Origin: Calcarisporiella thermophila CBS 279.70
Taxonomy: Eukaryota > Fungi > Calcarisporiellomycota
Assembly: GCF_041956535.1 (NCBI RefSeq)
Contig: NW_027192237.1
Span: 7,351 to 58,277 of the forward strand
Direction: 5' to 3'
Length of the DNA stretch: 50,927 nucleotides
This document shows positions 19,086 to 43,496 of the stretch, in pieces (positions within the stretch are counted from its first letter, which is position 1; the number at the start of each line of letters is the position of its first letter). Position numbers and translations under genes: made by a program. The notes beneath the pieces were generated by a model. That model ran no database searches, was not told the DNA's origin, and saw only the letters and a program-made list of their open reading frames with translations.

Positions 19086-19486
19086 TCACGCTCGTGCATA
19101 TGCAGCCACACTAATTCACCAAGCGCAGAATGCCGCTTGAAGCTCACACTAGAGTTGGGGTTTTGTTGGACATAAGTTTCGGCAAAACCAATTAATGCAC
19201 CGACCCCATCAGCAAGTTCGGGATTGTGTTGTATGTTAGTTTGCCCAATGATTTTCTCAGCCGCAATTCGAGGATTGTGCTCGTTGAATGCGAGAAAGTA
19301 GAATGCTACATCTGTCGATTTTATGTTTCTCATTAGAATCAAGTGTTCGAAATTTGCCTTCTTTGTCCTGCTAAAAGTCTGGGCTTTAGAGAAAATTAAT
19401 AAATCATTAATAGAGAAAGCTAATAACATTACGAAGCAAATAATAAAGCTGAGCTTAGATATAGGAGTAGACGAAGTATTTAACAT
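19086..19486 (-). pseudogene. N-terminal part of a secreted SnoaL-like protein, fused in frame to gypsy Gag
   Basis: Hydrophobic LSFIICFVMLLAF, then FYFLAFNEHNPRIAAEK, IQHNPELADG, KRHSALGELVWLHMH; lacks the DIFR..GKI.EHW C-terminus. Confidence 0.7.
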
Positions 19487-21704
19487 AATTGTTGATATAG
19501 ATATCAAACGTGTGTTTATAAGGTCAAATATGAATTATAATATAAATAAGCAATGAGTTTTGATTTATATTGTGAATTCATCGAAATATTTATACAATTT
19601 CAGTCCAGTACTGTTTCTATAAGATATCAATATTATACATACGATGGTCACATTGCAAAATACAAACTAAATTTGTTGAAATAGTCTTTTTATCCAAATT
19701 CGACCATAGCCTGTAAATGTAGATTAAGGGCAGAAGGAAGGCAACTCTCTTGGAAGATTCCAGAGAGAGTAGACCAAGTACATAAATATCAGCGTCATCC
19801 AGAGTTATAGTAGAAATTGGAGTGGTTGGTTTATGGCTCATCATCAATCCTTATATAAAGTCTGTAGGGTGAAAATACTGTAAAATAGAGAAAGTATAAG
19901 CGCATGTATAAAGGACTGAGTACCTTCGTGATTCCCTAGATATTTACTAATGCTTCACGTATTTTTTCAGAGTTTTTTATATGGAGAAATGTTTACAAAC
20001 TATAGTAATATTGTGGCGTCAGAGCATTATAGAAAAACGCGGAAGTTTTTCCGTCTTTTCTATATGCTTCTATACTTTATCTATTCAATTTCACCTGGTG
20101 AATTTTGTAGATGTAAGAAGTTAGTAATAAAGATTACTTTGAACTTTCTCCCTATATCTTTTTTATTAGAATATTTCAAGCAGATAGCACATTCTACTGT
20201 TTTCATAGTCTTAGTTACAGTGTTGAAAATGAGTTTTACCACCGCCTTATTGTTGGTACTTGACTTTGCACAAGCGCAGCAATCCTCCTCTAACCTACCA
20301 AGAAACATTTCGAATGAGAGCTTTTAAAAATTAAACTAACAGCAGTTTACATTTACTAGAATTCTACCAAGATATACACTGTACTAGCCTCACTCCTACT
20401 TCGACATGCAATGTTTCGAAATCGAGATAAATTAAAGGACGGGAACAGGAGTACTTTTCAATTATACCTAGAACTGCCTGAGAAAAGATCAATATAAAAA
20501 TGTAACATCCTATCTTACCCCGATCAAGTAATTGGTATATGTTATAGATTTTCACTTTTTTGAGACGAGAGGATTGTCAAGCCAATACCTATAAATACAA
20601 CAACTCGAGATTTTTATGAACCAAATCTTACTCAATACTCTTAGCTTGGCGTTACTTCGTTTCCTTAATTTTTTCCAATAGATATAATGCATTTACTTTT
20701 CAAGCATATAGGTGAAGGAGCTTTTTTCAGCGACACGCTATTTTACTCAATTATCTTATTGTATCACAATTAGCTACTTTTATGTTGCTCACTAGATAGA
20801 TGAATATCCGTTTTCTGATGGAGAATCGCAGGCGACCACATATTAACACCCTCTGTTTGGGAGCAAATTGGAACTGAAATGGACGAATGCCGGAAAAAAA
20901 TTCCAAGATGCTTTGGACGACCACCACGCAACATCCATAAGCACAATAAGTAATATGGCTGAAGAGTGGATGAACTGGACCACCCGATTTTTTCTTACTT
21001 TTCTCGATGTTAAGTTCCCGTTCAGGTCAAGGACCAGTGGATTCTTTATTAGATGACTTAACCATTGTACGTTGTATTTATATCCATTATCTACCTGTCT
21101 CTAGAATATAAGATGGGTAGGCTAAATTCGTATCGGTCGTCTGACTTGGTCTTATTTGGACTATCACAAACACGGATATAAGTTCTTTACGGAAAAACCT
21201 CGAGTCGCTTTATGAATATTACATAGGAAAACTTCAAAACAGTGGCATGAATTTTTTTAAAATAATTTTATTATTTTTTGGTAGAGAATACACCGGAGAA
21301 ACAAGGAAGTTATTTCCTTTACATCATATAGTTTTTTTATTGTTTTTTTCACGTCCATGGTTCTATCCTGGATTAAGCACCGTCATGAAATTTCTAGCAA
21401 TTCCCAATGAAGAGATATAGTAGTATAATGGTGCCATATTTAAATTACATTTATTCTCTTTCATAATTGAATAGAAACATGCTGTTCTTCAGTTTTCTTA
21501 TTCTGGACTAAAAGATCAAAACGGCATCTTTATGCAAATCTTAGGAGTCAGATGACATACAAAGAGCAACTTAGTCACATTCAAATTACCACAATTTTTG
21601 CATTAATAATGATTTCCTCTATGAGAAAGCGTCCTGCTCGCTGGTCAAATAAAAGTGTCTAATCAAAAATAACTCTTTGTTTAGACACGATTAAAGCTTC
21701 TGTG

Positions 21705-22153: not shown

Positions 22154-23345
22154 ATGTTCATCGACTCTCCTCTTTCTCGGCTAAGCCACGAGCAGCTAGA
22201 GCAATACCTGGATCGGATCGAGACATCCTTAAAGCAGCTCAAGCTTGGTGACGAAATTCATCCTGTATATGATAACAAAGCTTACATTATAAATGGTGAC
22301 GCACTCCCATCCCCGACGCTTCATGTCCTAACCAAGATTGTGCGTGCACATGCGACACATATTCCTTTTGGAAACGCTGGAATGGTATACTTTGACGTCG
22401 ATGCACCCAACTGGGCTCCTACCGCAGATGTTAGCGCTGCCACCGAGCCACCTATGAATGTGACATACGTCAGTACGGAGCTTGAACATATCTTCCATAA
22501 GCTAATCCATCGTAAGCTGGATGCATATTGCTATGAACAAAACGAACTCCTAGCCGCAGCCTTGAGAACTCTTGGCTTTACTGTCTGGTCTGGAAAAGCC
22601 AGGGTGTCCAGTTCACAATACCTACCAGACCGAGAATACACCTTCTTTCCTCTTTATCACCAAATTCTCTTCGTTTTAATCGACGGCCAAGAATACTTAT
22701 GTGATGTTGCGTATGGCGGTGTCTTTTTCCTCGCACCCATTCCCATTCGAACGAATGAGGTAGGCATTACCATATAATGAATATTCATGTGTGTGATGGC
22801 ATCGAGCATTTGCGTACAGCGCATCTGCTCTTAGCTGCTTAATACCAACATCGTCATTGTATTTCATATTTTAGATCATCAAGGGTGTCGGCCTTATTGG
22901 CGATGAGGTGAAATTTGAACGGCAAGAATGTTCTCCTAGTGCGGCTCGTCCACATACCACTCCTGTATTTGGTACTAGTGCATTGCGCACTCCGTTAACC
23001 TTGTTCGCGCGGCATAATTCAGATGCAGATTTTGTTCCGCATTACTGTTTTACTGATGATGAGTTTTTCCCGGTGGACTATGTTTCCGCAAATATTGCTC
23101 AATATTCGGTTCGTGGCCTTTTCAGCCATCACCTATTAGTGCAACTGCCTGACAAAGACGGTCGCGGCAAAAAAACTTTATTTGATGACACATTCAAGAT
23201 ACTCCGCGATGGTGTTGTTATCGAACGTCGTACTCTTACCAGCGAAGCTGAACGCATCCAGGTGTTGAAGGAGCATTTCCACCTGGAGTTTACTGAAAAG
23301 GAATTGCGCTCTCCTCAAGCTTGTCGTTTGAGTTTGGATAAATGA
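22154..23345 (+). CDS. Arylamine N-acetyltransferase-family enzyme (~358 aa); exons 22154-22759 and 22875-23345
   Basis: Cys-His-Asp triad motifs YCYEQNELL, YHQILFV, LCDVAYGG; HIPFGN; intron 22760-22874 (GTAGGC...TTAG) joins the two ORFs in frame. Confidence 0.9.
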
Positions 23346-24140: not shown

Positions 24141-26108
24141 CTAATTAGCACCGACCGCAACTTTTTCCAACCCAATAGTCGCTTTAGCATCACTGGCTCG
24201 AACCAAAGCAGCAATCTCGTGTACGTCCAACTCAGGTTGCCACACGACTTGACAGTTTTCGAGCTTCCTTATCTTACCGCAGGTATAGCACTTTCTCCAA
24301 TCAGGCCGCGAGGCGACCCAGCTTCCACAGTGCTCACACCTCCTAGTGAATACATCCTTCCAAGTCTTCCCCTTCAAGTAGTTTAGCTCAATGTCGTAAT
24401 AACGAAGAAGACCATCCCAGCGGAAGTTGAAGCGGTTAGAGGCCACAGCCTCTCGTTTAATAGCATTCGAATACTCAATCAATTCATTAACAGTCTCAAT
24501 GGAAACAGGTTCGTACAGCGGACCATCGAGTAGCTCAATGGTCTTCCTCGCGACAGCATCATACTCTGGCACTTGGGATCCCCATTGCCAATTCTTGGAG
24601 TGGTCAACATAAGTTGCAAATGTTAGGTTGTAATCTTGTCGGATGAGTTGCCATCCAGGAATACCTATGCCAGCAAAGAACTGCCAGAGGGTAGAAACTT
24701 GGGGTCCAAGCTCAGGATGGCGGAAACAGAGGTAATTGAACTTGTTCATCTGGTGCAGTGAAGGGATAAGCTTGTCACAAAATTCGTCATATGGCTTGAA
24801 CAATTCCAAGCGTTTCTCCGGATCTGACGTAGCCAAGGCCTTGTGAGTCAGCTCAGCCGCGTATGTAGAGGTCGACATGCTAGCCGTGATTCCAGGAGAA
24901 TGAAGGGGATTGGTGAATCCTACGGCATCACCAATGGCGAACCATCCAGGTCCAGAAACCTTGGGAGACTGGTAAGCGAGTTGTTTGCGAACAAACCAAG
25001 TGGTGTTCGGTCCATATAGATCCTCGATCAACTCGTAATTCTCCATCACCCGTGAGATCATGGGGTAGCGCTTCACCCAATAGTTAAACTTCTGTTCGGC
25101 TTCCCTAGATCCGTACGGCGTCAAATCTTCGGGATACCGTGCGTCATCGCGAACAGCAAACCCAATACTAACGACCCACTGAAGCTTAAGATCAAACATC
25201 CTTGCAAGCTCTTCAGACGATGGGATTTCATCTGCAGGGGTCTTGTTCTCGGCATGATCAAGCAAGTAGTTCATCATATCCATCAAGTTAGGGATGGGAC
25301 TACCTTCCCAGGATGGCAAGCGAATCACCCAGGCCCATCCTTCGGGGAAGCAGAGGTGATTTGTGTGGTCACCCTCAAAGAATCTAAGCGGAATCTTGGA
25401 CTCATCCTTACAAGTAAAGTAGGCCCAGTATGCGTTGACGTTCCAGCCGTCGAATCGCTTGAGGCGAGCTTCCTTGGAAGCAAACTGGCGGAATCTGCCT
25501 GTAGCGTCAGCTAAGAACTGTGAAGAGATGGGCTTGGAGATTTTGGATGCGTTTTCCACTACATGGATAGTATTTCCAGTACCGGAAAGTTTTATTTCAT
25601 GGATATCAATCGTATGGCCATGGAAAACATTGACACCATGTCGCTGAGCATAAACCGTGAACAGCAGCTCGCTGATGGGACGCTCTATCTGGTAGCCAGA
25701 TAAGAACAAGCAAGGAGTTCCATTGCTGCAGAAATCGGTATAATACTCCGGATTTTGTGCATCGAAGAAATAGAAGCAGAGGCCATCCTTGAGACCAAAA
25801 ATGCGTAGGAGCACTTCCGCGTTGAGTCCCATCATCTTGCACCAAAGGGAAAAAAGAGGAAGCGTGCTTTCCCCAATTTTGTAACCTGGTTTGGGTGACT
25901 TCTCCACGACTGTGACGTTAATGCTAGGGTCAAAGCGTTTAGCGTGAATAGCGTAGATGAGACCATGAATACCGCCACCCGCAACCACTACATCCTGCTT
26001 CTCAGGAAGTGTAGGGCTAATGTTATTGGAATTAAGGATCTCTGCGGTCGAAAGGCCTTGCTGTTGAGCACGTTCGGCAAATGTGTGGCGAAGTTCAACA
26101 ATAGTCAT
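24141..26108 (-). CDS. Flavin-dependent halogenase, MalA-type with C-terminal Zn-binding Cys4 (655 aa, intronless)
   Basis: GGGIHG FAD motif, KIGEST, putative catalytic Lys107 (GLKDG), WAWVIRL (WxWxI), GDAVGFTNPLHSPG, CxxC-x12-CxxC (C591/594/607/610). Confidence 0.92.
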   Translation of the reverse strand: MTIVELRHTFAERAQQQGLSTAEILNSNNISPTLPEKQDVVVAGGGIHGLIYAIHAKRFDPSINVTVVEKSPKPGYKIGESTLPLFSLWCKMMGLNAEVLLRIFGLKDGLCFYFFDAQNPEYYTDFCSNGTPCLFLSGYQIERPISELLFTVYAQRHGVNVFHGHTIDIHEIKLSGTGNTIHVVENASKISKPISSQFLADATGRFRQFASKEARLKRFDGWNVNAYWAYFTCKDESKIPLRFFEGDHTNHLCFPEGWAWVIRLPSWEGSPIPNLMDMMNYLLDHAENKTPADEIPSSEELARMFDLKLQWVVSIGFAVRDDARYPEDLTPYGSREAEQKFNYWVKRYPMISRVMENYELIEDLYGPNTTWFVRKQLAYQSPKVSGPGWFAIGDAVGFTNPLHSPGITASMSTSTYAAELTHKALATSDPEKRLELFKPYDEFCDKLIPSLHQMNKFNYLCFRHPELGPQVSTLWQFFAGIGIPGWQLIRQDYNLTFATYVDHSKNWQWGSQVPEYDAVARKTIELLDGPLYEPVSIETVNELIEYSNAIKREAVASNRFNFRWDGLLRYYDIELNYLKGKTWKDVFTRRCEHCGSWVASRPDWRKCYTCGKIRKLENCQVVWQPELDVHEIAALVRASDAKATIGLEKVAVGAN

Positions 26109-27317: not shown

Positions 27318-29463
27318 ATGGTGAACGCTGAGGAACATGCCAATATTAATGGCCAAAATGGCTCTAATGCTAACAACATTGCCCATAAGATTACTGATCT
27401 CATCGGCCGGTATCGAATCATTAGTGAAAATGACCAATTTGACAAAACAGGTCGAGACAAATTGCTCTCCCAAATTAGCGCTATGGTGAAGAACGAGGAA
27501 GCCATCCAAATGATTCTGCCTGGTTTTGCTTTCAAGAGCCCTAATGACGACATCAAAGTCATTGGTAAACTTCCCGACAAGGCAGAAGAGCTAGCACTTT
27601 TGCATCTTGACGGTCTTTGCGACTCCATAAAGGAAATTTACTCTAAGGGAGCCAGACTCACTATTGTCAGTGACGGTCTTGTCTACAATGGTAAGTTATG
27701 ATCAAGCCTGACTAAAGTTTAGTGTTAATTGAATAAAGAGAATCTTATATCTCAGTTGCTGACATCTAAATTATTTTTTTACGCCTATAGACCTCCTGCA
27801 CGTCGCCGATGAAGATGTCTGGCGATATAGTATTGCCATCCGAGAGATGTCCAAGGACATACGCGCCGAACATATCCATTTTGTTCGTGTGAGCGAGCTG
27901 CTAGGTGAAACTGCACCCCAGACGGAGGAGGAGTACCTCACCAGAGTTAAGGGCATTCGCACTCGCCTCTTCGAGGAATATCTTCCAGCCGGGTATGACT
28001 TTGAGCAGAAGTTAAAGGAAGATGCAGATGTTTTGGCCACCCATCAAAGTTATATTAAGGTGGTAAAGAAAGATCTGGCCAAGGTGCTCAATGGCAGCGC
28101 ACCAGAAGTTGCAGAAAAAATGCAGTCCGATGTAGCCAAGCAAATGATTCAACGTGGCCAGGTACAATTAATCTGTTTAAGATATTGCTGTGAACTCTTG
28201 CTTCTTTCACCGCAATACCACTGACTCTATAGTATTGTCTTGCTCTAGTGTTTCGCCAACATTATAGCATCCAAGTATTCTAGTCACGTTCGTCTCTCGA
28301 TTCATCCTTCCAACAACATAAACAAGTTGTCCATCTCATTATTTCCTGGTAAGAAGTACGCGACTATACCCATAACGCCTTGGCATAGCACAATATTCTT
28401 GGATGCCACCGGTAATTTCGATGTACTACTGCGAGAAGATATTTCGGATAGCAAGACAAAAACCCAAGTCATTCTCAAGGACGATAAACCCTGGCTAATG
28501 CGAGAAATAGACAGTGTTTACGAGTGGGAGGGCATGGATATTGCTTTTGAACCCTTATATCCCTGTGGCATCATGGTCAAACCTACGCGCAAAGGTCAGA
28601 TATACAACTTCGTAGACGTCGACATGCAAAAGGTTAGACGACTCGCTCTATCCAACGCCCCTGTCATTCTTCGTGGTTTCGCCATGCCCGTCGAAAAGGA
28701 AATATTCCGCAGGAAAGCGGCTGAGTTAGGTGAGATCCAGATGTGGCCTTTTGGAGACATCCTGGAAGTTCGAGAAAACGCTGATCTCAACATGAATAAT
28801 GTCTTGACCCGTGAAGATATGCCTTTCCATTATGATGGCTGTTTCAAGATGGTTGAAAATGACAAAGGAGAAGTCGTTCCAAAGCCGCCACTGTGAGTAT
28901 CAATCCCTTCTTACTTCGTGCCAAATATCCTAATAATGAATAATCTAATGTGGCGTCCTCTGCTTACCGAATGCGATAGCTTCCAGATGTTCCGCAACAA
29001 AGCTAGCACCGCCGTGGGTGGATTGACCCTTTTCTCATCATCCAAACTACTCCTTGAACTGCTACCATCCGATCTTTCATTTGAGAGACTCAAAAATCTC
29101 GAGTGGTCCAGTTATACGCCAGAGAACGATGCGTTTGGAGGCAAACCCATTGAACAACCGTTGATCTCGCCTCACCCTGTAAACGGTGCGCCAACGATAC
29201 GCTTCCATGAACCATGGCCCGAGACCAAGACAGCCTCTTGCCAACCCACCTATGTCAGCATTCTAGGTGTCAGCAAAGAGGAAAGCGATGAGATTTGCGA
29301 GAAGCTGACGGTCTTATTATACGACAGGCGTATATGCTACCGTCACCAATGGCAAGAGGGCGATTTTCTCTTCAACGACAACATGGCAACGCACCATACA
29401 CGTACGGCATATCAGACCGGCTACCGCGAACTATGGCGTGTTCACGTAGATGCAGCTTGGTAA
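27318..29463 (+). CDS. Isocyanide synthase (PvcA/Dit1)-Fe(II)/2OG dioxygenase (PvcB/TauD) fusion, copy 1 (~623 aa); exons 27318-27690, 27791-28161, 28249-28892, 28980-29463
   Basis: LPGFAFKSPN, LPDKAEE, SDGLVYND, RLSIH, TPWH; WPFG, HYD (28828-36), IRFHEPW, NDN..THHTR, RELWR; three GT-AG introns restore one frame. Confidence 0.93.
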
Positions 29464-29587
29464 ATGCTGCAAGTGTAGTTTTTTCTTCATATGCGATATC
29501 AATAAAAACTATGTCTTAATCATAGAGTAGCAGTATATTCTGATCTAATATGGTATTAAAGATAAAAACTTGGCGTGGTATACATAC

Positions 29588-29925
29588 TGTACATACAAAT
29601 ATACCCATATAAGAAGTGGGCATAGGGAAAACATAGGGAAATAATATGGAACACATGCGGAATACCTCACTTTCCTATAATTTCCCTATAATTTCCTTTA
29701 TTTCCTCTAATTTTACTATAAATTCCGAATCCTTACCCATATAAAAATCCATATAAAATCCATATAAAATCCATATAAACTCTATTAAAAATTATAGAAA
29801 ATATCAGGAAATCATAAGGAAAATGAGGTGTTCACTATGTTTTCCGCATTTTTTCCCTATTTTTTCCCTATGTGATTTTCTATAGTTTATATTTGTATAT
29901 AGCGTATACGCTATATACAAATATA
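29588..29925. repeat. Foldback/MITE-like element with CCATATAAAAT tandem core and adjoining perfect 38-bp palindrome (29888-29925)
   Basis: Left arm (CATAGGGAAA repeats, ACCTCA) is the imperfect reverse complement of the right arm; TATATTTGTATATAGCGTA|TACGCTATATACAAATATA. Confidence 0.7.
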
Positions 29926-30396
29926 GGCTCCAAGTTAAATAAATAGTGATATATTTTATAGGATTCCTTGGAGTTTAGTGTATCATATTGGATCACCCTG
30001 ATCGTTCTCATTCATGCGTGGGATCAGGCAGTGGACGAGGCGCCGGCTTCAGCCCGTGTTCTGCATACAATAGCATATGACGACGTTTATTATTATCGGG
30101 CCTCGCTGGCTACCCGTGTGCTTAGACTTGAATTGCGTTATCTTCAAATTCGCATCAACTCCCTTATATCTCCGATAAATATTTTTTGATCTATTCCTTA
30201 CTAGTCAGTGTGTACTACGAAGTAAAATAAAATTATTAAGTACTACGTTAGACTACATTAGAGCTCTTTGATACGCTACATAATTTCCTGCTGAATACCA
30301 CTGAGCCATAAAATTATGTAATAATTATTTTCATTGATGTTTATATACCCTGGAGCCTCCCTCTTCGTCCTTATCAAGGTACAGAGCCTATTCGAG

Positions 30397-31956
30397 ATGG
30401 TCGTGCCGCGCGTCCCGCATCTTTTCATTTCATTCTCAACTGGCCATGGCCATGCTGTGCCAATCTTAAGTTTTGCTCGTCGTCTAATTAATACGCCGAA
30501 TGCTCTCTCAGACACGGGCGCCACCCATGGGCATAAAATTCTGGTCACCATAGCCATAGTAGACACGTTTGCCGATGAACTTGTCGCTACTGGGTTCATT
30601 CCCTCACCCGATGAACATGCCGTAATCTTACGTGGTTCCTATGGTGAGGTGCGTCTAGTCAAGCTACACGACCTTCTCGTGATTGATCCTCAAAAGGACG
30701 GCAAGTATCCCTCCAAAGGTTTCCAATGTTATATCGAGTCAGCTCGTCAAACTGGCAGTGCCATCGAGCGTTATCTTCGCGAGCAGCAAAATCCAAATAA
30801 CCTTCACCCCGTCACGGCTGTGATCTTGGACACATTTATTGTTCGCAGCTGTCCCAAGACACCAAACGCTGGATTACCCTTTTATATTATAATGACAACA
30901 GGATTTTCAACGAGCCCAGATACTATGTTCCCACTGCCTCCGCTGGACATGAAAGCGGATGTACCATATGATCAAGATGTCCGTATGGATTCTATCTCAC
31001 CCGATAACTTCGGATTGATATTTGCACAGCGTCACCGTGCCGCCACCCTGCTTCCCGAATGTCGTGGATTCCTGTGGAATACCGTGGACGGTATTGAAGG
31101 CGATATCTTGCAAACCAGCAAAGTATGGCAAGCCAATTATCCAGGCGTACCTGTGCGCTTCTTAGGCCCTCTCAACTGGATTGATTCGGTGGATAACTCT
31201 GTGCCATCCACTGCTTCTTCAGCCGCCACTGCTCAAAAAGACAGTAGACTCCAGAAGCAGCAAGCCATTGATGCATATGTCCGGCAGTGGATGGATAGTC
31301 AAGAGGACGCCTCTGTGTTATTTGTGGCATTTGGTTCGGTGACCGTAACTACCCCTGAGCAAAAGGTCGAACAGCTTCGAGGACTGATTTCAAGTGGTAG
31401 GCGCATTCTGTGGGTGTTGCGTGGTAGCATGGAACCTATCTTTCCATATGTTCAAAATCATCCTGGCATTCCAGAAGGCATGCTCGTTGCTCATAGCAAT
31501 ATCAAAGTGGGAGACAAACCTGGTGAGGTAGTGATAGTACCATGGGCTCCTCAACGCGACATCCTAGCTCATCGTGCTACAGCTGCATTTTTGACGCACT
31601 GTGGTTGGAATTCGACGATGGAAGCGCTCATGTATGCTCGTCCCACTCTCGGATGGCCAGGATTTTGCGACCAGGCCGATTCGGCCAACTTCTTAAAGAA
31701 GCTTGGCGTGGGTATCAACTTCCCAGATACTGCCGCTCCCGTTGTGGGTCCAGTACCAAGCATGGAATCTGCCCGCGTTGTTCCCCATGATGAAATCACT
31801 GAAAGAATTAACGAGCTCTTTGCTTCCGAGAATTTCCCTCAATTCGTCGCAAATGCGAAAAAATATAGCTTAGCCATGCGATCTGCTTGGAATATTCCTG
31901 ATGGATCTTCCTATCTTGCCCTTGTGAACTTTGTAGCAGAACTTGACAAGTTTTAG
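30397..31956 (+). CDS. GT1 UDP-glycosyltransferase (~519 aa, intronless)
   Basis: N-terminal GHGH catalytic His; VLFVAFGS; full PSPG box WAPQRDILAHRATAAFLTHCGWNSTMEALMYARPTLGWPGFCDQ; ATG at 30397 chosen as start. Confidence 0.93.
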   Translation: MVVPRVPHLFISFSTGHGHAVPILSFARRLINTPNALSDTGATHGHKILVTIAIVDTFADELVATGFIPSPDEHAVILRGSYGEVRLVKLHDLLVIDPQKDGKYPSKGFQCYIESARQTGSAIERYLREQQNPNNLHPVTAVILDTFIVRSCPKTPNAGLPFYIIMTTGFSTSPDTMFPLPPLDMKADVPYDQDVRMDSISPDNFGLIFAQRHRAATLLPECRGFLWNTVDGIEGDILQTSKVWQANYPGVPVRFLGPLNWIDSVDNSVPSTASSAATAQKDSRLQKQQAIDAYVRQWMDSQEDASVLFVAFGSVTVTTPEQKVEQLRGLISSGRRILWVLRGSMEPIFPYVQNHPGIPEGMLVAHSNIKVGDKPGEVVIVPWAPQRDILAHRATAAFLTHCGWNSTMEALMYARPTLGWPGFCDQADSANFLKKLGVGINFPDTAAPVVGPVPSMESARVVPHDEITERINELFASENFPQFVANAKKYSLAMRSAWNIPDGSSYLALVNFVAELDKF

Positions 31957-33488
31957 TTGTGGGCTTGTTCTTGATTTTTTGGATTTAAAGCGCGTTCATT
32001 ATTTTTGATAGAATATGACAATTTGAATATGATAAATATCTATTGCAATTTTGAATTGATTTCAATTTGATGTATATATATTTTGATAATCAATGAAGCA
32101 CATTTGCACGCTTCCAGTAATACACGCTCATGGGAAGGAACACAGGTTCCAACTGGCAGAGTATTTTCAAACTTCAGCTAATGAGATTGATGTTGACAAT
32201 ATTTTGAGTTTAATTATTCAATCTGCTCATTGAATTTTTTATCATACTTCGTGCTAAGAAAACTTGTGGAAAAAAGGGCACATACATTCAGAAAAAAAAA
32301 AACGGTGAACTTGGCATCGCCTACTTGAATAATTCTATAACACTACCTTTTTGGTAGATATAATAAATATGGAAATTTAGTGAGGAACCATATAATAAAA
32401 CAAGGGAATTAAATACTCAAAGAAAACGATCTAATTATTTAATGGTCAAAAGATACTGTATGCTCTAAGATAAGCTGAGGATAATAATATATAAATAAAA
32501 GATAAAAATAAATATGGTCATGACTGGTGTCATTAAAGAAAGCTGAGCGGGTTTACGTCAAGGCTTAGAGAGATATTGCTCGAGTGGTTCGTCCCGCTAC
32601 AACTTCCTCTTGATTGGGCCGAGTATAGTCCTCGCATCTATTACTCTATGAGCTGCCATTCTCTCCATATACCACTTTGTGAGCGATGCTTAATATTCTA
32701 TTGGTTCATATGCACGAGAAGGACAAGAGATACAAGGTATGCACGAGGTAAAATCCATTAAGACGTGTTTTACAGCCATGAGTTCACTAATGACTTTTAA
32801 CTGTTGTCTTAAATCTTATTACCTACATATATGAAGTCGACCTCTTCTCTCTCTTCTTTCAATGTATATGAGTCGTCCTCATACTCTTTGAAAGGAGAGA
32901 GGAATTCTGTGCATAATAGCCAACCCTGATTCAACTACTTTTTCCTCCTACCCCTTCAAGAAGTCTCGAGTTGAGCGGATGGGGAAGGATACTGTTCCAC
33001 TAGCTTTAAGCGAAGAAAGATTCAGATTTGACCACAAAATAAGATCAAATTTATCTCGATTTCATTAATATACATACTGATTAAAAAAATGGAACACTTC
33101 GACAAAAAACATATTTCTTCATTTTTTCGAGCCTTCATGAAGAAAGGACACGGAATTGTCAGATTGTATTTTATTAAGCAAATTTCACAATGCTCTTGGA
33201 TGGGTTTACGAAACCATACAATTCTATGAAAGACAACAAAAAGAAATAGGCAAAAATGCTTGAGAAAGTTAAGATATTGTACGGTTAAACAGGGCATCTC
33301 TTTAAATTAGAGTGAGTAGGTAAATATAACATCCAATGGGTACTATGGCACGCAACAAAATTCATAAATATGAGTGCATAAAAAATAAAATATTACGGAT
33401 GGGAGCGTAGAAGCAAGAATAATCAAATGTCTTCACAAAGAGATCTTAATCATAAATAGGTCTCAAGTTATAAAATCGGAGTTTGGTA

Positions 33489-35276
33489 CTATACAGGAGA
33501 CATGTCTGACTCCTTCTCATTTTTCATACCTTCCTCGGCATTCAATGGCGTTGGAGTGGACGCGGCAGAAGCCTGTGGTGTTAATTCGATGTGTTTCAAG
33601 CCCAAGGTCAGTAAGATCATTATTCCAGTTAATGGCGTCATGGCGATGAAAACCTTGTGGAAGGCTTCTCCATAAGCAACACCAATGATTTTTTGATCTT
33701 CCGGTGACAACGTCGATATGAATTCAATGCCTTTGTTGGCAGTTTCAATGAGAACAGCGCCATTCGGTAAGCCAGAAAGGGACTCTTGAATTATATTTAG
33801 CTGGATGGCGCTAAAGATGGCAACGCCAATGACACCACCAATAGTACGGAAGAAAGCGATCAGCGTGGTTCCCGAAGACATGTCCTGCGGTACCAGCGTT
33901 GCTTGCGCAGCGATAATGGAAGTTTGGAAGGAGAAACCTGCGCCAATACCGCAAATGACAAGAAAACCGGCAGACATGCCGGGCGAACTATGTTGATCTA
34001 GGAGGATTAATAGGCCACTTCCGAGGGTGCTGATAATAGAGCCCAATAGGATGAAAGGGCGATAGGATCCCGTCTTGGAGACAACCATCCCGGATAAAGT
34101 AACGGTCAAAGCGAGCGGAATCAAGAAAGGGAGCAATTGTAGACCGGCTTGGATAGCCGATTCACCACGCACGGCTTGGAAAAAGATAGGAATGACGAAG
34201 ATCAGCCCAAAGAAAAATATGCCGAAGACAAAGGCAATGAGCGAACTGAGGGTGTAGTTAAGACTCCTGTAGAGCCCAAGTGGCATGATGGGCTCAACGG
34301 CCACCTTAGCTTCGATGAAAAAGAAGATGCCGCACAGGACAACACTAACGACATAGAGTGCAATGATCACAGCGCTATTCCACGCGTGAACATGGCCGCC
34401 CCACAGTGTCGCCAACAAAAAGCAAACCACGGCGCTTACAAAGGTCAGACTGCCAAGCCAGTCAATTCGCCGGAGTTTTGCCATGAACGATGTCCGTACC
34501 TCTGGAAGCACAAGGAATATCATCGTCAATATAATGCCCGGAACTACAAGTGGAACGTTGATGTAGAAGGACCATCGCCATGACACCTTATCGGTAAATA
34601 CACCACCAAGGAGGGGCCCAATAGCGCTTGCCAGTGCAAACATCATGCCAAACACACCCATATACTTGCTGGACTGCTGAACGCCAACCAGCTTCACCAG
34701 AAGGACCATCGGTAGGTCCATCATGCCGGCCGCGCCTATACCCTGGATCAACCGTGCGCCAATCAACATAGACATACTCTGCGCGGCTCCACTTATCACA
34801 GAGCCAACCAAGAAGATGGCCATCGAGAATAGATACGTGTTTTTTCCGCCAAAGATATCCGCTAATTTACCGTAAATCGGCTGCAGCGAGCTACCCGCCA
34901 GCAAATATACCGTAGCAACCCAGCTGACTGATTCAAACTCATGGAAGTCGTAGGCAATCCTCGTGAGTGCCGTTGAAACAATCGTATTGTCGAGAGCACC
35001 CAAAAAGAAAGATATTGACAAACTACCAAGCACGAGGAAAAGATCGCGACCACTAAGCGCATTTCCATCGTCGGTGCTGTGCATGGTGTCCGACTGTTTA
35101 ACATCGGCATGCTGATCAACCAATTCAGTTGATGGCAAAGACGCATCCGAAACCGCATCTCGCGGAAGGATCACCTCATCTTGAGACACAGATTTCACTT
35201 CACAAGACTCCGTTGAGCCGACCGAATCGAGCGTCGGCTGATCAACTTCCGCAGAGTGGCTCGGCGATGCTGCCAT
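33489..35276 (-). CDS. MFS DHA2 (14-TM) drug/toxin efflux transporter (595 aa)
   Basis: LDNTIVSTAL, YGKLADIFG, RLIQGIGAAG, GPLLGGVFTDKVSWRWSFYINVP, FFRTIGG. Confidence 0.95.
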   Translation of the reverse strand: MAASPSHSAEVDQPTLDSVGSTESCEVKSVSQDEVILPRDAVSDASLPSTELVDQHADVKQSDTMHSTDDGNALSGRDLFLVLGSLSISFFLGALDNTIVSTALTRIAYDFHEFESVSWVATVYLLAGSSLQPIYGKLADIFGGKNTYLFSMAIFLVGSVISGAAQSMSMLIGARLIQGIGAAGMMDLPMVLLVKLVGVQQSSKYMGVFGMMFALASAIGPLLGGVFTDKVSWRWSFYINVPLVVPGIILTMIFLVLPEVRTSFMAKLRRIDWLGSLTFVSAVVCFLLATLWGGHVHAWNSAVIIALYVVSVVLCGIFFFIEAKVAVEPIMPLGLYRSLNYTLSSLIAFVFGIFFFGLIFVIPIFFQAVRGESAIQAGLQLLPFLIPLALTVTLSGMVVSKTGSYRPFILLGSIISTLGSGLLILLDQHSSPGMSAGFLVICGIGAGFSFQTSIIAAQATLVPQDMSSGTTLIAFFRTIGGVIGVAIFSAIQLNIIQESLSGLPNGAVLIETANKGIEFISTLSPEDQKIIGVAYGEAFHKVFIAMTPLTGIMILLTLGLKHIELTPQASAASTPTPLNAEEGMKNEKESDMSPV

Positions 35277-36097
35277 GGTTATGATAATGAAGAGTATTTG
35301 GAATTGATCTCGTTACAGCGGTAATGAACTGTACTTTTGGAAAATGAATGCAATCTTTACAACACGATTCCGACAATCCTATCTAATAAAATATAATAAG
35401 TGGGACTTCGAAGAGATGTTGATTGGGAAAGGAAGATGGAATGTCGAACTAATCTGATTTTGAGGGGTAACCAAGACGTGACGCAGCGCGGGATGTACCG
35501 GTATTGCGACGAACTTAATTCTATTAAATAACTCTCGGGGTTCTCAAGCTATCTTAGCTCCTATCGCAGCTTCACAATATTTCAGAAAATTTAAGGTAAT
35601 AAAATCGACCCTGTGTAAACAGCAATAGAGGATCACCAAAAACTTATTGTATTAAAGTATGCTATTCGTCCGTGATGAACAACGATATCTTGAGTTTCAC
35701 GAATACCATTGTCCTTAGATAAGTGAATAATTATTGGATAAACTTATTATCAAACATTAATATTAAAATTAAAAACTTTAAATATAACTCAGTTTCCCTC
35801 TACTGTCCTATTGATCCATTTTGAGCACATTTTTCTTCACAACCCTAGCATTTTGTTACCGTATTGTAAACCAGCTCAGCGGATTGCGTAACCTACAAAA
35901 ATTTGTCATAGATTTGGACTCACTATATCACGGTCCTACCATATTCGCCTAAATCCCATAGAATATGTCGGAGCATCGCAATTGTTACCTCAAGATCTTT
36001 GGATCTTCTATCCTTCGACCACGATGTACAATCTAATAGGTGTTCGATATTGTATAAACTTTGCACAATAGGCATTAAGTCATTTTGTTGTGACTCA

Positions 36098-36299
36098 CCC
36101 TACAAAAAATGTGCATGGTGAAAACAGACAGGATATGAAGATAGGAGGCAAGGAGAATATTTTGCGATTCTCTATAATTCTACTGTGATTTCTAAACTCT
36201 TCACCATGTTAAAATATTATACTAATTTAGAGAATCGCAAAAGTTCTCCAGGCCTCTTGTATGTTACTATATGTTTTCACCATATGCTTTTTTGTAGAG
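36098..36299. mobile_element. CCCTA-family MITE in the MFS/ICS2 divergent promoter region
   Basis: CCCTACAAAAAATGTGCATGGTGAAAACA...TGTTTTCACCATATGCTTTTTTGTAGAG; internal GCGATTCTCTA/TAGAGAATCGC inverted pair as in the 40838 MITE; no TSD match. Confidence 0.65.
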
Positions 36300-36741
36300 G
36301 TAGAAGCCTAAAATTTTAGGTTTAGCCATGTTTTGTGAATGACCCTACCGATATATGAAATATAATAAAATTTACACATCGGGGTGCGTCCGAACTATCA
36401 TTCACTTGCTTTACCATATTGTAACATTTTCTCTAAACTCTTGGCCGGGTCACCTATAGTCACCTAATTTGCCCCTTATATTAGAGATTAAGATAAAGCG
36501 CAAAATAACAAGCCAAACCCAGAGTTCACATTTTAATTTTTCTCCTACACTTGTTTTGCTTCTTCTTAACATTCTTAACGACGCGTGGTCTGTCAAAAAC
36601 TGCCACCTACTATTAAAGATCTCCATATCGACGAACGCAGTACTCTTAACCTCATTTAAGAAAAGCATCAGTTCTTCCAATAATTCCCACTAGCTAGTGT
36701 ATATTGTTGTTTTCCTATTACTCAATTGAATTTCGCAAAAA

Positions 36742-38828
36742 ATGGTTGGAATCATCCCTACTCCCGATATTCAGCTAGGTCTTGAGTCTATTAAGTATCA
36801 GAATGCCGACCAGAAAGCTCACAAAATATGCGAAATTCTCGCCCGATATCGTATCTCCGGCCCAGTCGACTTGTTTGAACAAGTTGGTCGTCCCAAGATC
36901 CATGCCAAAGTGCGAAACATGATTTTGAATAGTCAGCCAGTAGAAATGATCCTTCCCGCATATCCCTTCAAGAGCCCCAATAGCACATATAAAGTGATTG
37001 GTGTTCATCCAGATAAAGCTGAGGAATTCTCATTAATCCACCTAAACGGACTTTGCCAGTCTATTACCGAAGTGTATCCAGGTGGCGCCAAGGTTGTTAT
37101 TGCCAGCGATGGACTTGTATACAATGGTAAGGTTCTTATACAATTTACATTAGGTGGTAGCAATTAGTAACATATTTTAACTCACGTGTTTCTGCTCGTC
37201 TTTTACAAAAATAGATCTCTTGAGCGTGTCTGATCAAGTGACTTGGAGGTATGATTTGGGCATCCGCGACATAGTAAGGAAACTCGACCTAAAGCATATT
37301 GAGTTTGTTCGCGCCTGCGAATTAATCGGTGAACCTGTTCCTCAAAGTGAAGAACAGTATATCGAGCGAATTGGCCATGTCAAGGCTCGACTTTTCAATG
37401 AATATCTTCCCGAGGATTATGACCTCGAGAAAAATATTCAAGAAGATCCCAATGCATTGGCTACTTATCGTGGTTATCTTCGTTTTCTCGCTCTCGATCT
37501 CAAGGGGGTCTTGGCCGGAAATATGGCAAAATCTGCTCAAAAGAAGGCGATCAAAGTTATTGCAAAGGAAATGATTAGACGCGGCAAGGTAAGCATTGGC
37601 ATGACAAGTGGATTGGTCGCACATTGATCTGGTAATCTAATATACGGTAAATATCTAAATTGAATGTTGTCTGGTAGTGCTTTGCAAAACTTATTGCAAT
37701 TAATTTCGCATCGAGCGTGCGGCTATCAATTCATGCCGCCGACAACACCGACAAACTCGCCATAACTTTGTTCCCTGGCCAGCATTTTGTAAAAAATCCT
37801 GTGACTCCTTGGCACAATACACCATATCAAGATGGAAATGCCACTTTTGCTGTGCTTCATCGCGAGAATATCTCAGAAAGCAATGTAAAAACACAAATTG
37901 TCCTGAAGGAAGACAAACCTTGGATTGTACGCGAGAATAACGACACATATGATTGGGAGAGAATGGATCTTAACTTTGAGCTCATGTACCCATGTGGTAT
38001 CATGATTTCACCCGTGAACAAGAATCAAGTATATAATCTCGTCGATGTCGACATGAAGAAAGTTCGACATCTCGCTCTCTCCAATTCTCCTGTCATTTTC
38101 CGTGGCTTCTCCATGCCCGCAGACGATGAAATCTTCCGCAAGAAAGCGGTTGAGCTAGGTGATGTTCAGATACGATCTTTTGAAGATATCCTAGAAGTTG
38201 AAGAAAACGCTGATTCCATTATAACTACGACTCGAGAAACTGTGCCATTCAATTTCGATGGTTGCTTCAAGATGAGCAAAAATGAAAAGGGAAAAATCGT
38301 TTCTCAGCCACCACTGTAAGTATCATCAAAGGCTGCAAAGCTAAACTCCCTTGCCATGACTAATCTAATTGACATTACTCTCGGATGAACACTAGATTCC
38401 AGATTTTCCACAGCAACTTTAATGCGGCCGTGGGTGGGTTGACTCTTTTCTCATCGTCCAAATTGTTCCTTAAGATGCTTCCGGAAGGCATATCTCTTGA
38501 GATGCTCAGTAAGCTAGAGTGGACCAGCAGTGGGTCTGCAAACGGTGATTTCATAGACACCCACCACAAATTACCACTGATCGTGCCCCACCCTGTGACT
38601 GGAGCACCCGTATCGCGCTTTCATGAGCCATGGCTGCAGTCTAAAACAAGCGGCAAACCTATCGATATTAGTATAGTAGGAGTCAACAAAGAGAAGAGCA
38701 AAGACATTTGCGAAAAGCTGACGGCCCTGTTTTACGACAGGCGCGTTTGTTATCGTCATCAATGGGAAAGTGGTGATATTCTCATCAGCGACACTATGTC
38801 CGTGCATCATGCACGTGCGGTATATTAA
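36742..38828 (+). CDS. Isocyanide synthase-dioxygenase fusion, copy 2 (~609 aa), dioxygenase domain probably inactive; exons 36742-37126, 37215-37588, 37678-38315, 38396-38828
   Basis: LPAYPFKSPN, SDGLVYND, TYRGYLRFL, RLSIH, TPWH intact; same three intron positions as copy 1; HYD changed to NFD (38251-59); premature TAA removes RELWR. Confidence 0.9.
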
Positions 38829-39020
38829 TGTGGTTCTTGTGAGTTATGATGTATTTACGTTGATTCAACTTAGTGAAGGAAGGAGGCTTAATTGAGGAGT
38901 TTATTTATTTTTTCTTGTCCATATATATTATATTTTTAAGATATCTATATTCGTATAAACTTCCATACTTTTAAGTGAGCTTGAAGCAATTTCGAAGATG
39001 AATAGTGTCCGTATTTTTAA

Positions 39021-40599
39021 TTTAGCACTAAGCCTAGCGTATGCGACGGCTTAGTATAAATGGAATAGGCAGTCAGCAGTCCATGCTTCACGATGATGAG
39101 GCCGTTTTATTGGACAAATGAGCTACTTCCAGAGAAGTTTGCATAGAAAATTAAAGAAATTTAAAGAAAAATAAAAAAATCTGAGAATAATCAAGAGTAT
39201 AAAAGGCTGCCGTTTCCCAAGTGCAACTCCTTGGCCGTTTTTTGAGCTGGCATACTTTCGTTTGAGAAATGGAGCCCTCGTTCACGCAAGCAACAAATCA
39301 GCACGCGAGTACTGAAGGATCTCTCTTGGCACTACTCTCTCCAGTGTCTATCCGCGAGAGCCATCAGTGGACGCCAGCGAACGATATAGCGGACGCGATT
39401 GGGCACAAAACACCATACGCACCCGAGTCCATCCTCACGTCTGAGGAGCGACAAGTCAATACGCACAGGGAAAATCGGCGGATTCCTGCCTTCTATATCG
39501 CTCAGCAATCGGGGAACTACAGACAAGCCATCCATCTCATCTCGATTCCATCGTCTCTAGATTCCTTAGGATAGTAGACAGATTAGCGCCCCCCTTAAAC
39601 CTGGCAGAAGACCCTATCGACATCACCCCGATTCTGGAACATCTCAGAGGAACGCCCAACACTGAACTATCCCTGCGCAACCTTACTTACAAGTTGGCAT
39701 GGCTCCTGGCGGTAGTCACCTTTCCTAGAGTATCCGCTCTAGCACGCATGGACCTTCAGTCGATCGCGGTCGACGTAACAATGATGAAGGGGAAGATAAT
39801 AGCACCGAAGGAAACGAGAAGAAATCGGCGCATCATAAAACCCTTCCATGTCCATCGATTCCCAGACCCCAACCTCTGTCCAGTAGAGTGTTTCATTGAA
39901 TATAGGAGGCGCTGGCAAGAGCAGGGTAAACTGCAACAAGGCTCAGAGGTATTCCTCTGCCCTGGAATTGCTCGCCCTGCCAGGCCCGCAACGATTTCGC
40001 GATGGATCAAAACAATCTTCGCAATCGCCTCACCCGACGCAAGAGCCCACGACGCGCGAAAAACAGGAGCCGCCCTCGCTCTACGAAGATTCAATGTAGA
40101 CACAGTGGTCGCAATAGGGAATTGGTCTTCCACCACTACTTTCGACCTATACTACCGCAGGGATAGAGCTGTAAATGCCGATATCTCGGGCGCGCTTCTC
40201 TCCTTAGGACTCGAGGAAGCGCGCTAGGGCCCTCTGGATCATCGTGAAGCATGGACTGCTGACGTAGTCCGCATTCTGTTTTAGCACTAAGCCTAGCGTA
40301 TGCGACGGCTTAGTATAAATGGAAAAGGCAGTCAGCAGTCCATGCTTCACGATCCCACCCCTAAATGTTTTTATTTTTTATTTTTTCTTATATCTCCCCA
40401 CCCCTCTTCTCGGGAGGGCCAAGGAGTTGCACTTGGGAAACGACAGCCTTTTATACTCTTGATTATTCTCAGATTTTTTTATTTTTCTTTAAATTTCTTT
40501 AATTTTCTATGCAAACTTCTCTGGAAGTAGCTCATTTGTCCAATAAAACGGCCTCATCATCGTGAAGCATGGACTGCTGATGTAGTCCGCATTCTATTT
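39021..40599 (+). mobile_element. Non-autonomous DIRS-type retrotransposon: 164-bp ITRs (39073-39236, 40417-40580), internal end-junction region (40238-40353), no RT
   Basis: Near-perfect ITRs; internal copy of the right end joined to the left end; tyrosine recombinase ORF. Confidence 0.9.
39694..40227 (+). CDS. DIRS tyrosine recombinase catalytic domain (5'-truncated)
   Basis: R (PRVS), K (PKET), LCPV, HxxR (HDAR), GNWSS, YYRR; upstream in-frame DITPIL...LSLRNLTYKL. Confidence 0.85.
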   Translation: MAWLLAVVTFPRVSALARMDLQSIAVDVTMMKGKIIAPKETRRNRRIIKPFHVHRFPDPNLCPVECFIEYRRRWQEQGKLQQGSEVFLCPGIARPARPATISRWIKTIFAIASPDARAHDARKTGAALALRRFNVDTVVAIGNWSSTTTFDLYYRRDRAVNADISGALLSLGLEEAR

Positions 40600-41290: not shown

Positions 41291-42573
41291 AGATGACTGG
41301 GAAAAGCGAGAGATTCATAGGGTAAATATGCCAGAAAAACTATTTATACAAAAAAATTGGCCACGTACAGGTTGCCGAAAAATAGTTGACGGAGACTGAC
41401 ATCTTATCGATATAAATCAAAAAATTAATAACTACCCTAGAGGAACGAGTGAGAATATTATTATAAACATATTTGTGACCTGCACTAATTTTAGGAATAC
41501 AAGCAAGTCACGTTTAAAAATGAGAAATAAATCGCCGGTGGAATATAGTTGATTATATATAAAATTTTTCAAGATGGCAAATAAGAGGACAATCAATTTC
41601 AACGGCTACAACTCGCTTCGCTTTGAATCGAGCACATTCAGACGATCCACCGTCTTATCAGGGGTGTCAGGAAAGACCAGCTGTACGGGTTTGCCGAGCC
41701 GATACCTGTCGCCCCTTGCCGGATATTAGGAGAGCGTGGCGGTGAGAATCATAGGCTCCTTGGTTGCTAGGATTAATGGCTCCCGTCCAGAGTGATCAAT
41801 CGCCACTGTGAACGAGAGTACATCACGTTCTTCATATTTCGGTGGAAAGTTTTGGATAACTCGCAGAGTGCTTTGCGGAACCAGATCAACGTCGTCCTGC
41901 TCCGTTGTTTACCGTCCTACCGCCTGCAAGCTCACCCGTTTAAGTTTTGAACCCAATGGTGCGAAGCCGGACACTGTTGAACGGGTCATTGGGATTGTCT
42001 AAGACACGTTGTTTAATGCCGCCGCGCAAATCGACTTGGTGCTTCGCCCCCTGAATTTCTAACACGCTGTTGATCGCTAACATGGATGACGGCTATATCC
42101 AGATTCTTGTTGTACCATAGTTGATATGGCGATTTCCCATTGATTGGCTTTGACGGTCACATATTTTTCACCAGTGTAGCTGTTCGCACAGCTTCGGTCC
42201 ATAATTCTTTGGGGACTTGCGATTGTTCTAATAATGTTCGCACAATCTCTAAGATGCTACGATTTGCGCGCTCGGCCGCGCCATTGCTCTCCGGGGTATA
42301 TGACGTTGTAGTCTGATGTTGAATCCCCCGTTCTTGCAGCACCTTTGCAACCGCATTATTCACGAATTCTGTTCCCCTATCGCTCCTGAACGCCTTTATC
42401 TCTGTTCCCGCTTCTTTCTCTGCCGCAAGAGTTGGGACATGGGGAACATTCGTCGTTGCAAACGTCACGTCCTCGCCGTTGGCGAGTCGCATGGAGACCT
42501 CGATATCACCGATCCCGAAAGCCTCGATTTTTGTGTTATCACCAATCTTAACATGCTCGCTACACGGAGCATA

Positions 42574-42785
42574 TGTCAGGATTTAATTTTTACTTAATTT
42601 TACATGCATCTAATTATTACTTGTTTGGGTGTATATGAAAATCCTGTTTATTGTTTTTGTTGTTATTCTTTAAATAGTTCAGCTATTTGTTTTCTGATCC
42701 TCACTCCTATTTTTCTCTTATATTTTTACTATTATTATTATAGTAAACTATAGGAGTCCGAAAGTCGAAAACTACTTTCGTTACA
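42574..42785. repeat. Solo LTR (212 bp), TSD GCATA
   Basis: TG...CA ends; GCATA at 42569-73 and 42786-90; related to 46755-46995. Confidence 0.88.
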
Positions 42786-43496
42786 GCATACTTGGTAAAG
42801 AGGTCACGTTGATAACACACATGCTGCGTAGTGCCCGAGTCCACAATCCACGCGTCTTGAATTGACCTGATTACGCGGAGGGCGAGTACTGGCAGCAAAA
42901 CCTTTGACTCATTCTTCTTGCCATTTTCCTTATTTCCCTTTCCTTTTCATCTATGGCATTCTCGTGTCATATGTCATGGTTTTCCGCACACGAAGCATGT
43001 AATATTGCGCCGATTACCCGCTTGATGGGTTCCTGCATTCGCGCGTTTGCCTTGCATAAACATCATGCGTTGGCCGTCGCTTATACTATTGCGTTCATTG
43101 CGACGTCTGTCTTCAGCAAGAATATGGTCGCGCACATTTGCTGATGTGAGCGTATCCATTGTCATAGTGGCGGCTACAGAGTCATAACTGGATGGTAGGC
43201 CACAAAGCATCATGACGGCAATCTCTTTGTCGTCGATATTGACGTCGATAACACGCAGTTGCTGAATGATTTGCTGAACGCGCGTAATGTAGTCCGTGAC
43301 GGATTCTTCAGATTGCATTTCAGTCCGAAACAATTCACGTTTGAGGGACACAATTGCAACAAACTCCGACTGTCTATGATGGCGCTTAAGTCGGTCCCAG
43401 GCTTCTTTCGCGGTCTCTACATCGTCAATAAGCATGAGCTGTTCGTTGTTCACAGCTTGGTAGATCAGACTCAATACTTGGTTATTGGATGGGGAA

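Follow-up and report, generated by a model that had tools for sequence, protein, structure and literature searches.

Why does a single fungal gene cluster hold two fusions of an isocyanide synthase (ICS) domain with an Fe/2-oxoglutarate (Fe/2OG) dioxygenase domain of the TauD family, and do both halves of both proteins still work? The question is raised by a 50,927-nucleotide stretch of the genome of the fungus Calcarisporiella thermophila CBS 279.70 (contig NW_027192237.1, positions 7,351 to 58,277; hereafter the window), in which two such ICS-TauD genes, here called copy 1 and copy 2, are found. A reading made from the sequence only had proposed that one protein acts as the synthase and the other as the oxidative decarboxylase, each keeping a dead domain. 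Our analysis favours, with somewhat better than even confidence, a division of labour in which copy 2 would make the isocyano amino acid and the copy 1 dioxygenase would decarboxylate it to the vinyl isocyanide. From the earlier proposal we retain a copy 2 that looks canonical as a synthase with a dead dioxygenase, and a copy 1 with the sole intact dioxygenase, but not the loss of the copy 1 ICS; loss of function is visible in the sequence for the dioxygenase of copy 2 only.

Gene models and shared introns

Domain and database searches over the window were carried out exon by exon, and the exons were joined by script for local comparison. In each copy, profile searches identified an ICS domain (PF05141) followed by a dioxygenase domain (PF02668), all the ICS exons of both copies matching PF05141 at 48-101 bits (Pfam cut-off 26.4), and our splice models are identical to the public proteins VTP21DRAFT_9058 and VTP21DRAFT_9061. 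All the motifs quoted for the two genes in the sequence-only reading are present. All six introns are GT-AG and fall in the same aligned codons, in phases 1, 0 and 2. The three shared positions, from which duplication had been deduced, are therefore real. Introns 1 and 2, however, recur with identical codon placement and phase in genes of Penicillium, Aspergillus and lichen fungi, so that they give no date for the duplication and had to be discarded as evidence that it was recent. Intron 3 was found, among the genes examined, only in the four Calcarisporiella genes.

The copy 2 dioxygenase is a predicted pseudo-enzyme domain

On alignment with the bacterial enzyme PIsnB, copy 2 has no equivalents of W74, H101, R261 and R265 (residue roles from PMC9467999). 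The tryptophan has become arginine, the first iron-binding histidine has become asparagine and both arginines lie 3' of the stop codon, while a threonine replaces an asparagine that is 93% conserved among homologues. On these residues the domain is predicted to be catalytically dead, unable to bind iron or substrate normally.

The terminal arginine strand had been described as lacking, which is true of the protein but not of the DNA, where it remains at 38826-38873 with three stops. Rescue by splicing was considered and rejected, as a possible GT-AG pair (38820-38873) leads to another stop, and read-through is blocked by the three stops. The 48 bases of this fossil tail differ by 42% from the paralogue on contig C30 described below, whereas copy 1 differs from that paralogue by only 10%; the stop is therefore probably old, although 48 bases leave a wide margin. 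The changes in the tail are mainly C to T and G to A, which fits AT-biased neutral mutation.

Upstream of the stop the frame has stayed open, as had been claimed. There are no stops in the 271 dioxygenase codons before the TAA compared with three in the 16 codons after it (Fisher p 1e-4). Simulated neutral drift at a synonymous divergence (dS) of 0.66, the value for this branch, gave an expectation of about 9 stops in this domain, and at a dS of 0.2 the chance of zero stops was 1%. The per-domain comparison of substitution rates that the sequence-only reading had suggested also speaks against neutrality: in a codon model, the ratio of nonsynonymous to synonymous rates (omega) on the copy 2 dioxygenase branch was 0.37, which is less than 1 (p 4e-6) and exceeds the background of 0.17 (p 0.036), and omega for the copy 2 ICS was about 0.11-0.14. 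Both deletions in copy 2 are in frame and its splice sites are intact. By its sequence the domain is thus a pseudo-enzyme domain whose frame is still maintained by selection, with a constraint that is relaxed yet real.

Copy 1 retains an intact dioxygenase

The residues of the copy 1 Fe/2OG centre listed in Table 1 align, in order, with W74, H101, D103, K107, N188, H250, R261 and R265 of PIsnB (residues from PMC9467999), and the motifs start at 28744 (W414), 28828 (HYD), 29395 (H602) and 29425 (RELWR). The His-x-Asp...His iron triad, the equivalent of Trp74, the terminal arginine pair and the combination of K107 with N/H188 are all present, in agreement with the earlier statement that the iron and 2OG motifs are kept. 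Lys107 together with Asn or His at 188 is the signature of decarboxylating enzymes (PMC9467999). Judged by these residues, the domain is an intact dioxygenase of the decarboxylating PIsnB type (decarboxylative desaturation), and no other dioxygenase of the cluster is intact. Copy 2 would depend on the dioxygenase of another protein, both under a division of labour and if the two ICS domains use different substrates.

One canonical and one altered ICS domain

For the ICS domains, conservation was scored over 69 columns, each conserved to at least 90% among 139 homologues; copy 2 keeps 62 of them, copy 1 keeps 61 and the C30 paralogue 61. Copy 2 carries the whole motif set LPxFPxKSPN, PDxxE, SDG, Y-R-G..F-L..D, RLSIH and TPWH, with a canonical helix (TYRGYLRFL, 37463), and is canonical as far as its residues can tell. 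It had been called the more canonical copy on two motifs, of which the helix bears this out, while LPAYPFKS (36952) is itself unusual: the family consensus is LPAFPFKS (119/139 homologues), and the tyrosine (F70Y) is seen in 1% of homologues, although ascomycete synthase-type partners (see below) have it too.

Against the same motif set, copy 1 differs at P71, Y209, G211, F215 and L216. The proline column is invariant in the homologues (Table 1), and the Y, R, F and L of the helix that are changed in copy 1 are kept by the bacterial enzymes PIsnA and PvcA as well. Among the 139 homologues, changes at four or more positions of the P/Y-R-G-Y/F-L/D motif were found only in copy 1 and in the dioxygenase-type clade introduced below. 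An AlphaFold model of copy 1 (pLDDT 93) matches PIsnA and PvcA (Z 36) as well as PIsnB and PvcB (Z 27-29), with a Z of 36.5 and a root-mean-square deviation of 2.3 over 308 residues against PIsnA. In this model the ICS domain keeps the PvcA/IsnA fold; its substitutions would remodel the pocket.

Paralogues and the mosaic history of copy 1

Contigs C30 and C2 of the C. thermophila genome each carry one further ICS-TauD gene, close to a paralogue of the halogenase that adjoins the window pair. In both proteins the ICS helix is canonical and the dioxygenase centre complete, and both are predicted to be bifunctional, with the two good halves in one protein. Their ICS domains are 73% identical to that of copy 2 and 51-52% to that of copy 1, while their dioxygenases are 83-84% identical to copy 1 and 62-63% to copy 2; one C30 protein therefore corresponds to the two good halves of the window pair, and the C30 cluster is a natural control for the split pair. 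No upstream similarity was found between the C30 gene and either ICS gene of the window.

The ICS domains of copies 1 and 2 are 48% identical, with synonymous sites saturated. Between copy 1 and C30, synonymous difference drops from 0.55 before the domain boundary to 0.28 after it (permutation p 0.001), whereas the synonymous divergence of copy 2 from C30 runs without a break. The copy 1 to C30 dS is 0.59 for the dioxygenase, to which the halogenase (0.73) and the exporter (0.75) are close, and is saturated for the ICS. An ICS clade of copy 1, C30 and C2 that leaves out copy 2 was rejected by the approximately unbiased (AU) test (p-AU 0.003); the branching order of the four dioxygenases gave a p-AU of 0.20, with informative sites 5 vs 5. 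The break at the domain boundary together with the ICS tree shows copy 1 to be a mosaic: its ICS half is ancient, and its dioxygenase half has recent ancestry in common with the other three genes. Reciprocal decay after a single duplication, as proposed earlier, has to be given up, and with it a simple course of duplication, degeneration and complementation with one divergence date along the genes. The C30 and C2 genes are either re-fusions or retain the ancestral state.

Comparable pairs in other fungi

Proteins of 440-580 residues that have a canonical helix but lack a working dioxygenase (synthase type) are the nearest relatives of the copy 2 and C30 ICS domains; a halogenase of the cluster's family often adjoins them. 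The nearest relatives of the Calcarisporiella dioxygenases are fusions of about 600 residues (dioxygenase type; 54-59% identity), in which the ICS helix is partly deleted and which databases label 'Isocyanide synthase A'. In the ICS tree, copy 2, C30, C2 and the synthase-type proteins form a clade (support 95/85), and in the dioxygenase tree the Calcarisporiella domains group with the dioxygenase-type proteins (Shimodaira-Hasegawa support 100). Copy 2 is thus allied to the synthase type. At 16 ICS sites copy 1 agrees with the dioxygenase type and differs from copy 2 and C30; these may be ancestral states, and the copy 1 ICS may belong with the dioxygenase type.

Genes of the two types are found together in Penicillium antarcticum, on a metagenome contig that carries the halogenase, and in Parajaminaea phylloscopi; in the last of these the ICS of the dioxygenase-type partner is reduced to 23% identity and its motifs are gone. 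Such split pairs make up a graded series in which the Calcarisporiella pair represents an early stage and erosion is further advanced elsewhere. In the locus of P. phylloscopi, a basidiomycete, the adjacent ICS-only and dioxygenase-intact genes occupy 7288-11491, with DJ-1 and major facilitator superfamily (MFS) genes, and the public gene model of the dioxygenase-intact gene begins within the eroded ICS domain. Three lichen-type contigs (Xanthoria) carry a synthase-type ICS, a MalA-like halogenase and an unannotated gene of 535-555 residues; no dioxygenase-type partner was found within 10 kb of the ICS, and the product of these clusters may stop at the isocyano acid, or another enzyme may be used. 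A scan of bacterial genomes gave one locus, a weak one.

A probable division of labour and its alternatives

Under a division of labour, the copy 2 ICS would condense an aromatic amino acid with ribulose-5-phosphate to an isocyano acid, which would diffuse to the copy 1 dioxygenase and be converted to the vinyl isocyanide. Tryptophan is suggested as the substrate by the MalA-like halogenase, and tyrosine is possible. The halogenase and the UDP-glycosyltransferase (UGT) would tailor the vinyl isocyanide and the MFS protein would export it, a chemistry proposed by analogy with PIsnA/PIsnB and AmbI1-3 (PMC9467999, PMC5947517). The copy 1 ICS would probably carry little of the pathway flux, and the dead or altered domains would be kept most likely for folding, rather than as an interface needed for dimerisation. 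The split would be old and alike in kind to the synthase-type/dioxygenase-type pairs of Dikarya, with later recombination at the domain boundary homogenising the dioxygenase halves and producing or preserving the bifunctional paralogues on C30 and C2. The split pairs of other fungi and the paralogues that unite both good halves argue for this reading.

Several observations, however, weigh against it. The earlier claim that each copy keeps a dead domain survives for the copy 2 dioxygenase but not for the copy 1 ICS, which retains all the invariant Lys, Asp, Arg and His residues (including K73, K80, D87, D119, R246, R263 and H267) as well as TPWH and stands on par with C30 and copy 2 in conserved columns. 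Its omega is far below 1 (p 3e-19), although with dS at the upper bound the value itself is unreliable, and its branch is clock-like, not longer than the path to its sisters; accelerated decay of this domain was therefore discarded. Unlike the scattered losses in the copy 2 dioxygenase, those of the copy 1 ICS are gathered in one helix, and changed specificity would fit them equally well as death. Placement of the copy 1 ICS with the dioxygenase-type clade as an orthologue is neither established nor rejected (p-AU 0.22). Moreover, some dioxygenase-type genes, in Aspergillus clavatus and Penicillium oxalicum, and some synthase-type genes of lichen fungi, have no partner within 10 kb.

In a first alternative, each active ICS domain would use an amino acid of its own (Trp for one and Tyr for the other, say, or a halogenated and a plain substrate), copy 1 would be a complete two-step enzyme for its substrate that also finishes the copy 2 product, and the only loss would be that of one dioxygenase. 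The ancient and strongly constrained copy 1 ICS, with its retained residues and with changes concentrated in one helix and one loop, would suit it, as would the tolerance of ICS and IsnB enzymes for substituted substrates (PMC5947517, PMC9467999). However, the residues lost are conserved in both tyrosine-using bacterial enzymes, PIsnA and PvcA, and in nearly all fungal homologues; the same helix is the first to go in the dioxygenase-type clade, which in Parajaminaea loses its ICS completely; and the C30 cluster works with a copy-2-type ICS only. We regard this alternative as unlikely, yet deserving of serious attention.

It is improbable, in our judgement, that copy 1 is a normal bifunctional enzyme for the same substrate and that copy 2 is a redundant booster of a slow first step. 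Hapalindole clusters do offer a precedent, AmbI2/WelI2, in a duplicated IsnA with one dioxygenase where the second IsnA is functionally redundant (PMC4236562), and purifying selection on the copy 1 ICS agrees with it. Six substitutions at near-invariant pocket positions nevertheless make an unchanged copy 1 activity unlikely, and AmbI1 and AmbI2 keep all six motifs and are far closer to each other than the Calcarisporiella ICS domains are (at least 78% compared with 48% identity).

An obligate heterodimer, in which the dead domains form the interface and channel the unstable isocyano acid, had been raised earlier as a possible scaffold and seems very improbable. The constraint on the in-frame dead domain of copy 2 and the reported instability of the intermediate (PMC4236562) would agree with it, but it is left without support because PIsnB is monomeric (PMC9467999) and because other pairs shed their dead domains: in synthase-type partners the dioxygenase is mostly gone, as is the ICS in the Parajaminaea partner, so that complete dead domains are no general requirement. 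That copy 2 is a decaying pseudogene, as its lost catalytic residues and early stop might suggest, is scarcely credible, and a neutral pseudogene is ruled out by the omega values and by the absence of stops in a domain whose tail decays freely behind the TAA, the intact splice sites and in-frame deletions also speaking against decay.

Extending the division of labour beyond this genome, we tentatively propose, at rather less than even confidence, that the widespread fungal two-ICS clusters work by reciprocal pseudo-enzyme formation, in which a synthase with a dead or shed dioxygenase is paired with a dioxygenase with a dead ICS, reversibly by recombination at the domain boundary. C. thermophila would then hold both a split pair and re-fused bifunctional enzymes, and its product would be a halogenated, glycosylated vinyl isocyanide undescribed from Mucoromycota.

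Such a scheme would give a testable function to the unexplained two-ICS fungal clusters. Some ICS-TauD fusions may be dioxygenases only in practice, which would change product prediction as well as heterologous expression, where both genes would be needed. The four paralogues in one genome amount to a natural experiment comparing a split pair with a bifunctional version beside the same tailoring genes. The pocket changes of copy 1 single out a helix that may set ICS activity or the choice of amino acid, copy 2 appears to be a clean case of a dead enzyme domain kept by selection and dated by its own decaying tail, and the pair, together with the later-stage splits in related fungi, could serve as a test of how fused enzymes come apart into specialists.

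Neighbouring genes and cluster layout

The UGT and the predicted MFS exporter sit between the two ICS-TauD genes, and the halogenase adjoins the group (Table 1). No arylamine N-acetyltransferase-family gene was found beside the C30 or C2 clusters, where unmasked DNA was examined. Ascomycete relatives carry a DJ-1/PfpI isocyanide hydratase gene inside the cluster; none was found on contig C47, and several lie elsewhere in the genome.

Retroelement remains surround the cluster, and the open reading frames at 16380-19507, 39694-40227 and 42157-43474 read as gypsy-like gag/pol pieces, a tyrosine recombinase-like frame and copia-like pieces. The best non-self match of the halogenase is at 66%, and both the halogenase and the ICS fusions match ascomycetes or basidiomycetes best, with no other Mucoromycota among the matches listed for them. 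On these matches, horizontal transfer of the cluster is plausible.

Table 1. Coordinates of the two ICS-TauD genes, their features and neighbours, and of the paralogous clusters; positions are those of the window except for the last two rows, which refer to contigs C30 and C2.
Feature	Position	Strand	Remarks
Arylamine N-acetyltransferase-family gene	22154..23345	+	Cluster edge; pathway membership uncertain
MalA-like flavin-dependent halogenase	24141..26108	-	Paralogues beside the ICS genes of C30 and C2; homologues beside synthase-type ICS genes of ascomycetes
Copy 1 (VTP21DRAFT_9058), ICS-TauD fusion	27318..29463	+	623 aa, 4 exons; dioxygenase predicted intact, ICS pocket altered
Copy 1 exons	27318-27690, 27791-28161, 28249-28892, 28980-29463	+	Splice model
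Copy 1 motif LPGFAFKS	27516..27539	+	P71A; column is Pro in 139/139 homologues
Copy 1 altered helix THQSYIKVV	28039..28065	+	Y209H, R210Q, G211S, F215V, L216V
Copy 1 approximate mosaic breakpoint zone	28411..28570	+	Codons ~305-355; ancient ICS half upstream, young dioxygenase half downstream
Copy 1 Fe/2OG centre, predicted intact	28744..29439	+	W414, H442, D444, K448, H539, H602, R612, R616
UDP-glycosyltransferase (UGT)	30334..31956	+	Intact paralogue on C30, fragment on C2
MFS exporter (predicted)	33489..35276	-	Paralogue on C30
Copy 2 (VTP21DRAFT_9061), ICS-pseudo-dioxygenase fusion (predicted)	36742..38828	+	609 aa, 4 exons; ICS canonical
Copy 2 exons	36742-37126, 37215-37588, 37678-38315, 38396-38828	+	Splice model
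Copy 2 features of the predicted dead dioxygenase	38173..38828	+	W to R at 38173 (RSFE); iron His to Asn at 38251 (NFD); N to T at 38793 (SDT from 38787); TAA 38826-38828
Copy 2 fossil terminal strand	38826..38873	+	Homologue of the RELWRVH strand; three stops among 16 codons
C30 cluster	about 69400-79200		Halogenase, one ICS-TauD, UGT and MFS, ordered as around copy 1
C2 cluster	about 1557800-1569600		Intact halogenase and ICS-TauD; UGT a fragment; retroelement DNA between

Comparison with known systems

Fungal ICS-TauD fusions, two-ICS clusters (icsA/icsB and gene cluster family (GCF) 1) and the loss of TauD from fusions are already known (PMC5974471, PMC10153163). About one third of the fungal ICS backbones are counted as ICS-TauD fusions (PMC10153163), and Nickles et al. 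have proposed that monodomain ICSs arise from them by loss. Fusions such as XanB of Aspergillus fumigatus, and IsnAB of Vibrio (PMC5974471), share with the present pair the PF05141 and PF02668 architecture and about 40% identity in both domains; the Calcarisporiella cluster differs in holding two fusions, each off consensus in the opposite domain, with the copy 2 dioxygenase apparently dead.

Closer in layout are GCF 1 and the icsA/icsB (4G) cluster of A. fumigatus (PMC5974471, PMC10153163); each holds a transporter and two ICS genes, of which the first is scored as monodomain and the second as ICS-dioxygenase. These ascomycete clusters have DJ-1 and transcription factor genes, whereas that of Calcarisporiella has a UGT and a halogenase with neither DJ-1 nor transcription factor gene nearby; its pair still has both full domains and resembles IcsA/IcsB in layout, the two A. 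fumigatus proteins themselves not being among the database hits. Neither an eroded ICS in the two-domain partner nor divided labour is described in the passages of these two papers that were consulted. No paper on Calcarisporiella ICS genes was found in a limited search of open-access literature.

The rhabduscin system of Photorhabdus and Xenorhabdus includes a glycosyltransferase. By analogy, the Calcarisporiella pair would functionally rebuild this two-protein system of IsnA and IsnB, again with a glycosyltransferase, and the copy 1 dioxygenase has the PIsnB ligands with the K107 and N/H188 signature (PMC9467999). The bacterial proteins are single-domain, however, whereas the Calcarisporiella fusions carry a dead or altered domain and are accompanied by a MalA-like halogenase. 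The cyanobacterial sets AmbI1/I2/I3 and WelI1/I2/I3 likewise combine two ICS domains with one working dioxygenase, and the Amb and Wel enzymes accept halogenated tryptophan (PMC4236562, PMC5947517). In these sets I1 and I2 are at least 78% identical and redundant, unlike the two Calcarisporiella ICS domains, whose synonymous sites are saturated.

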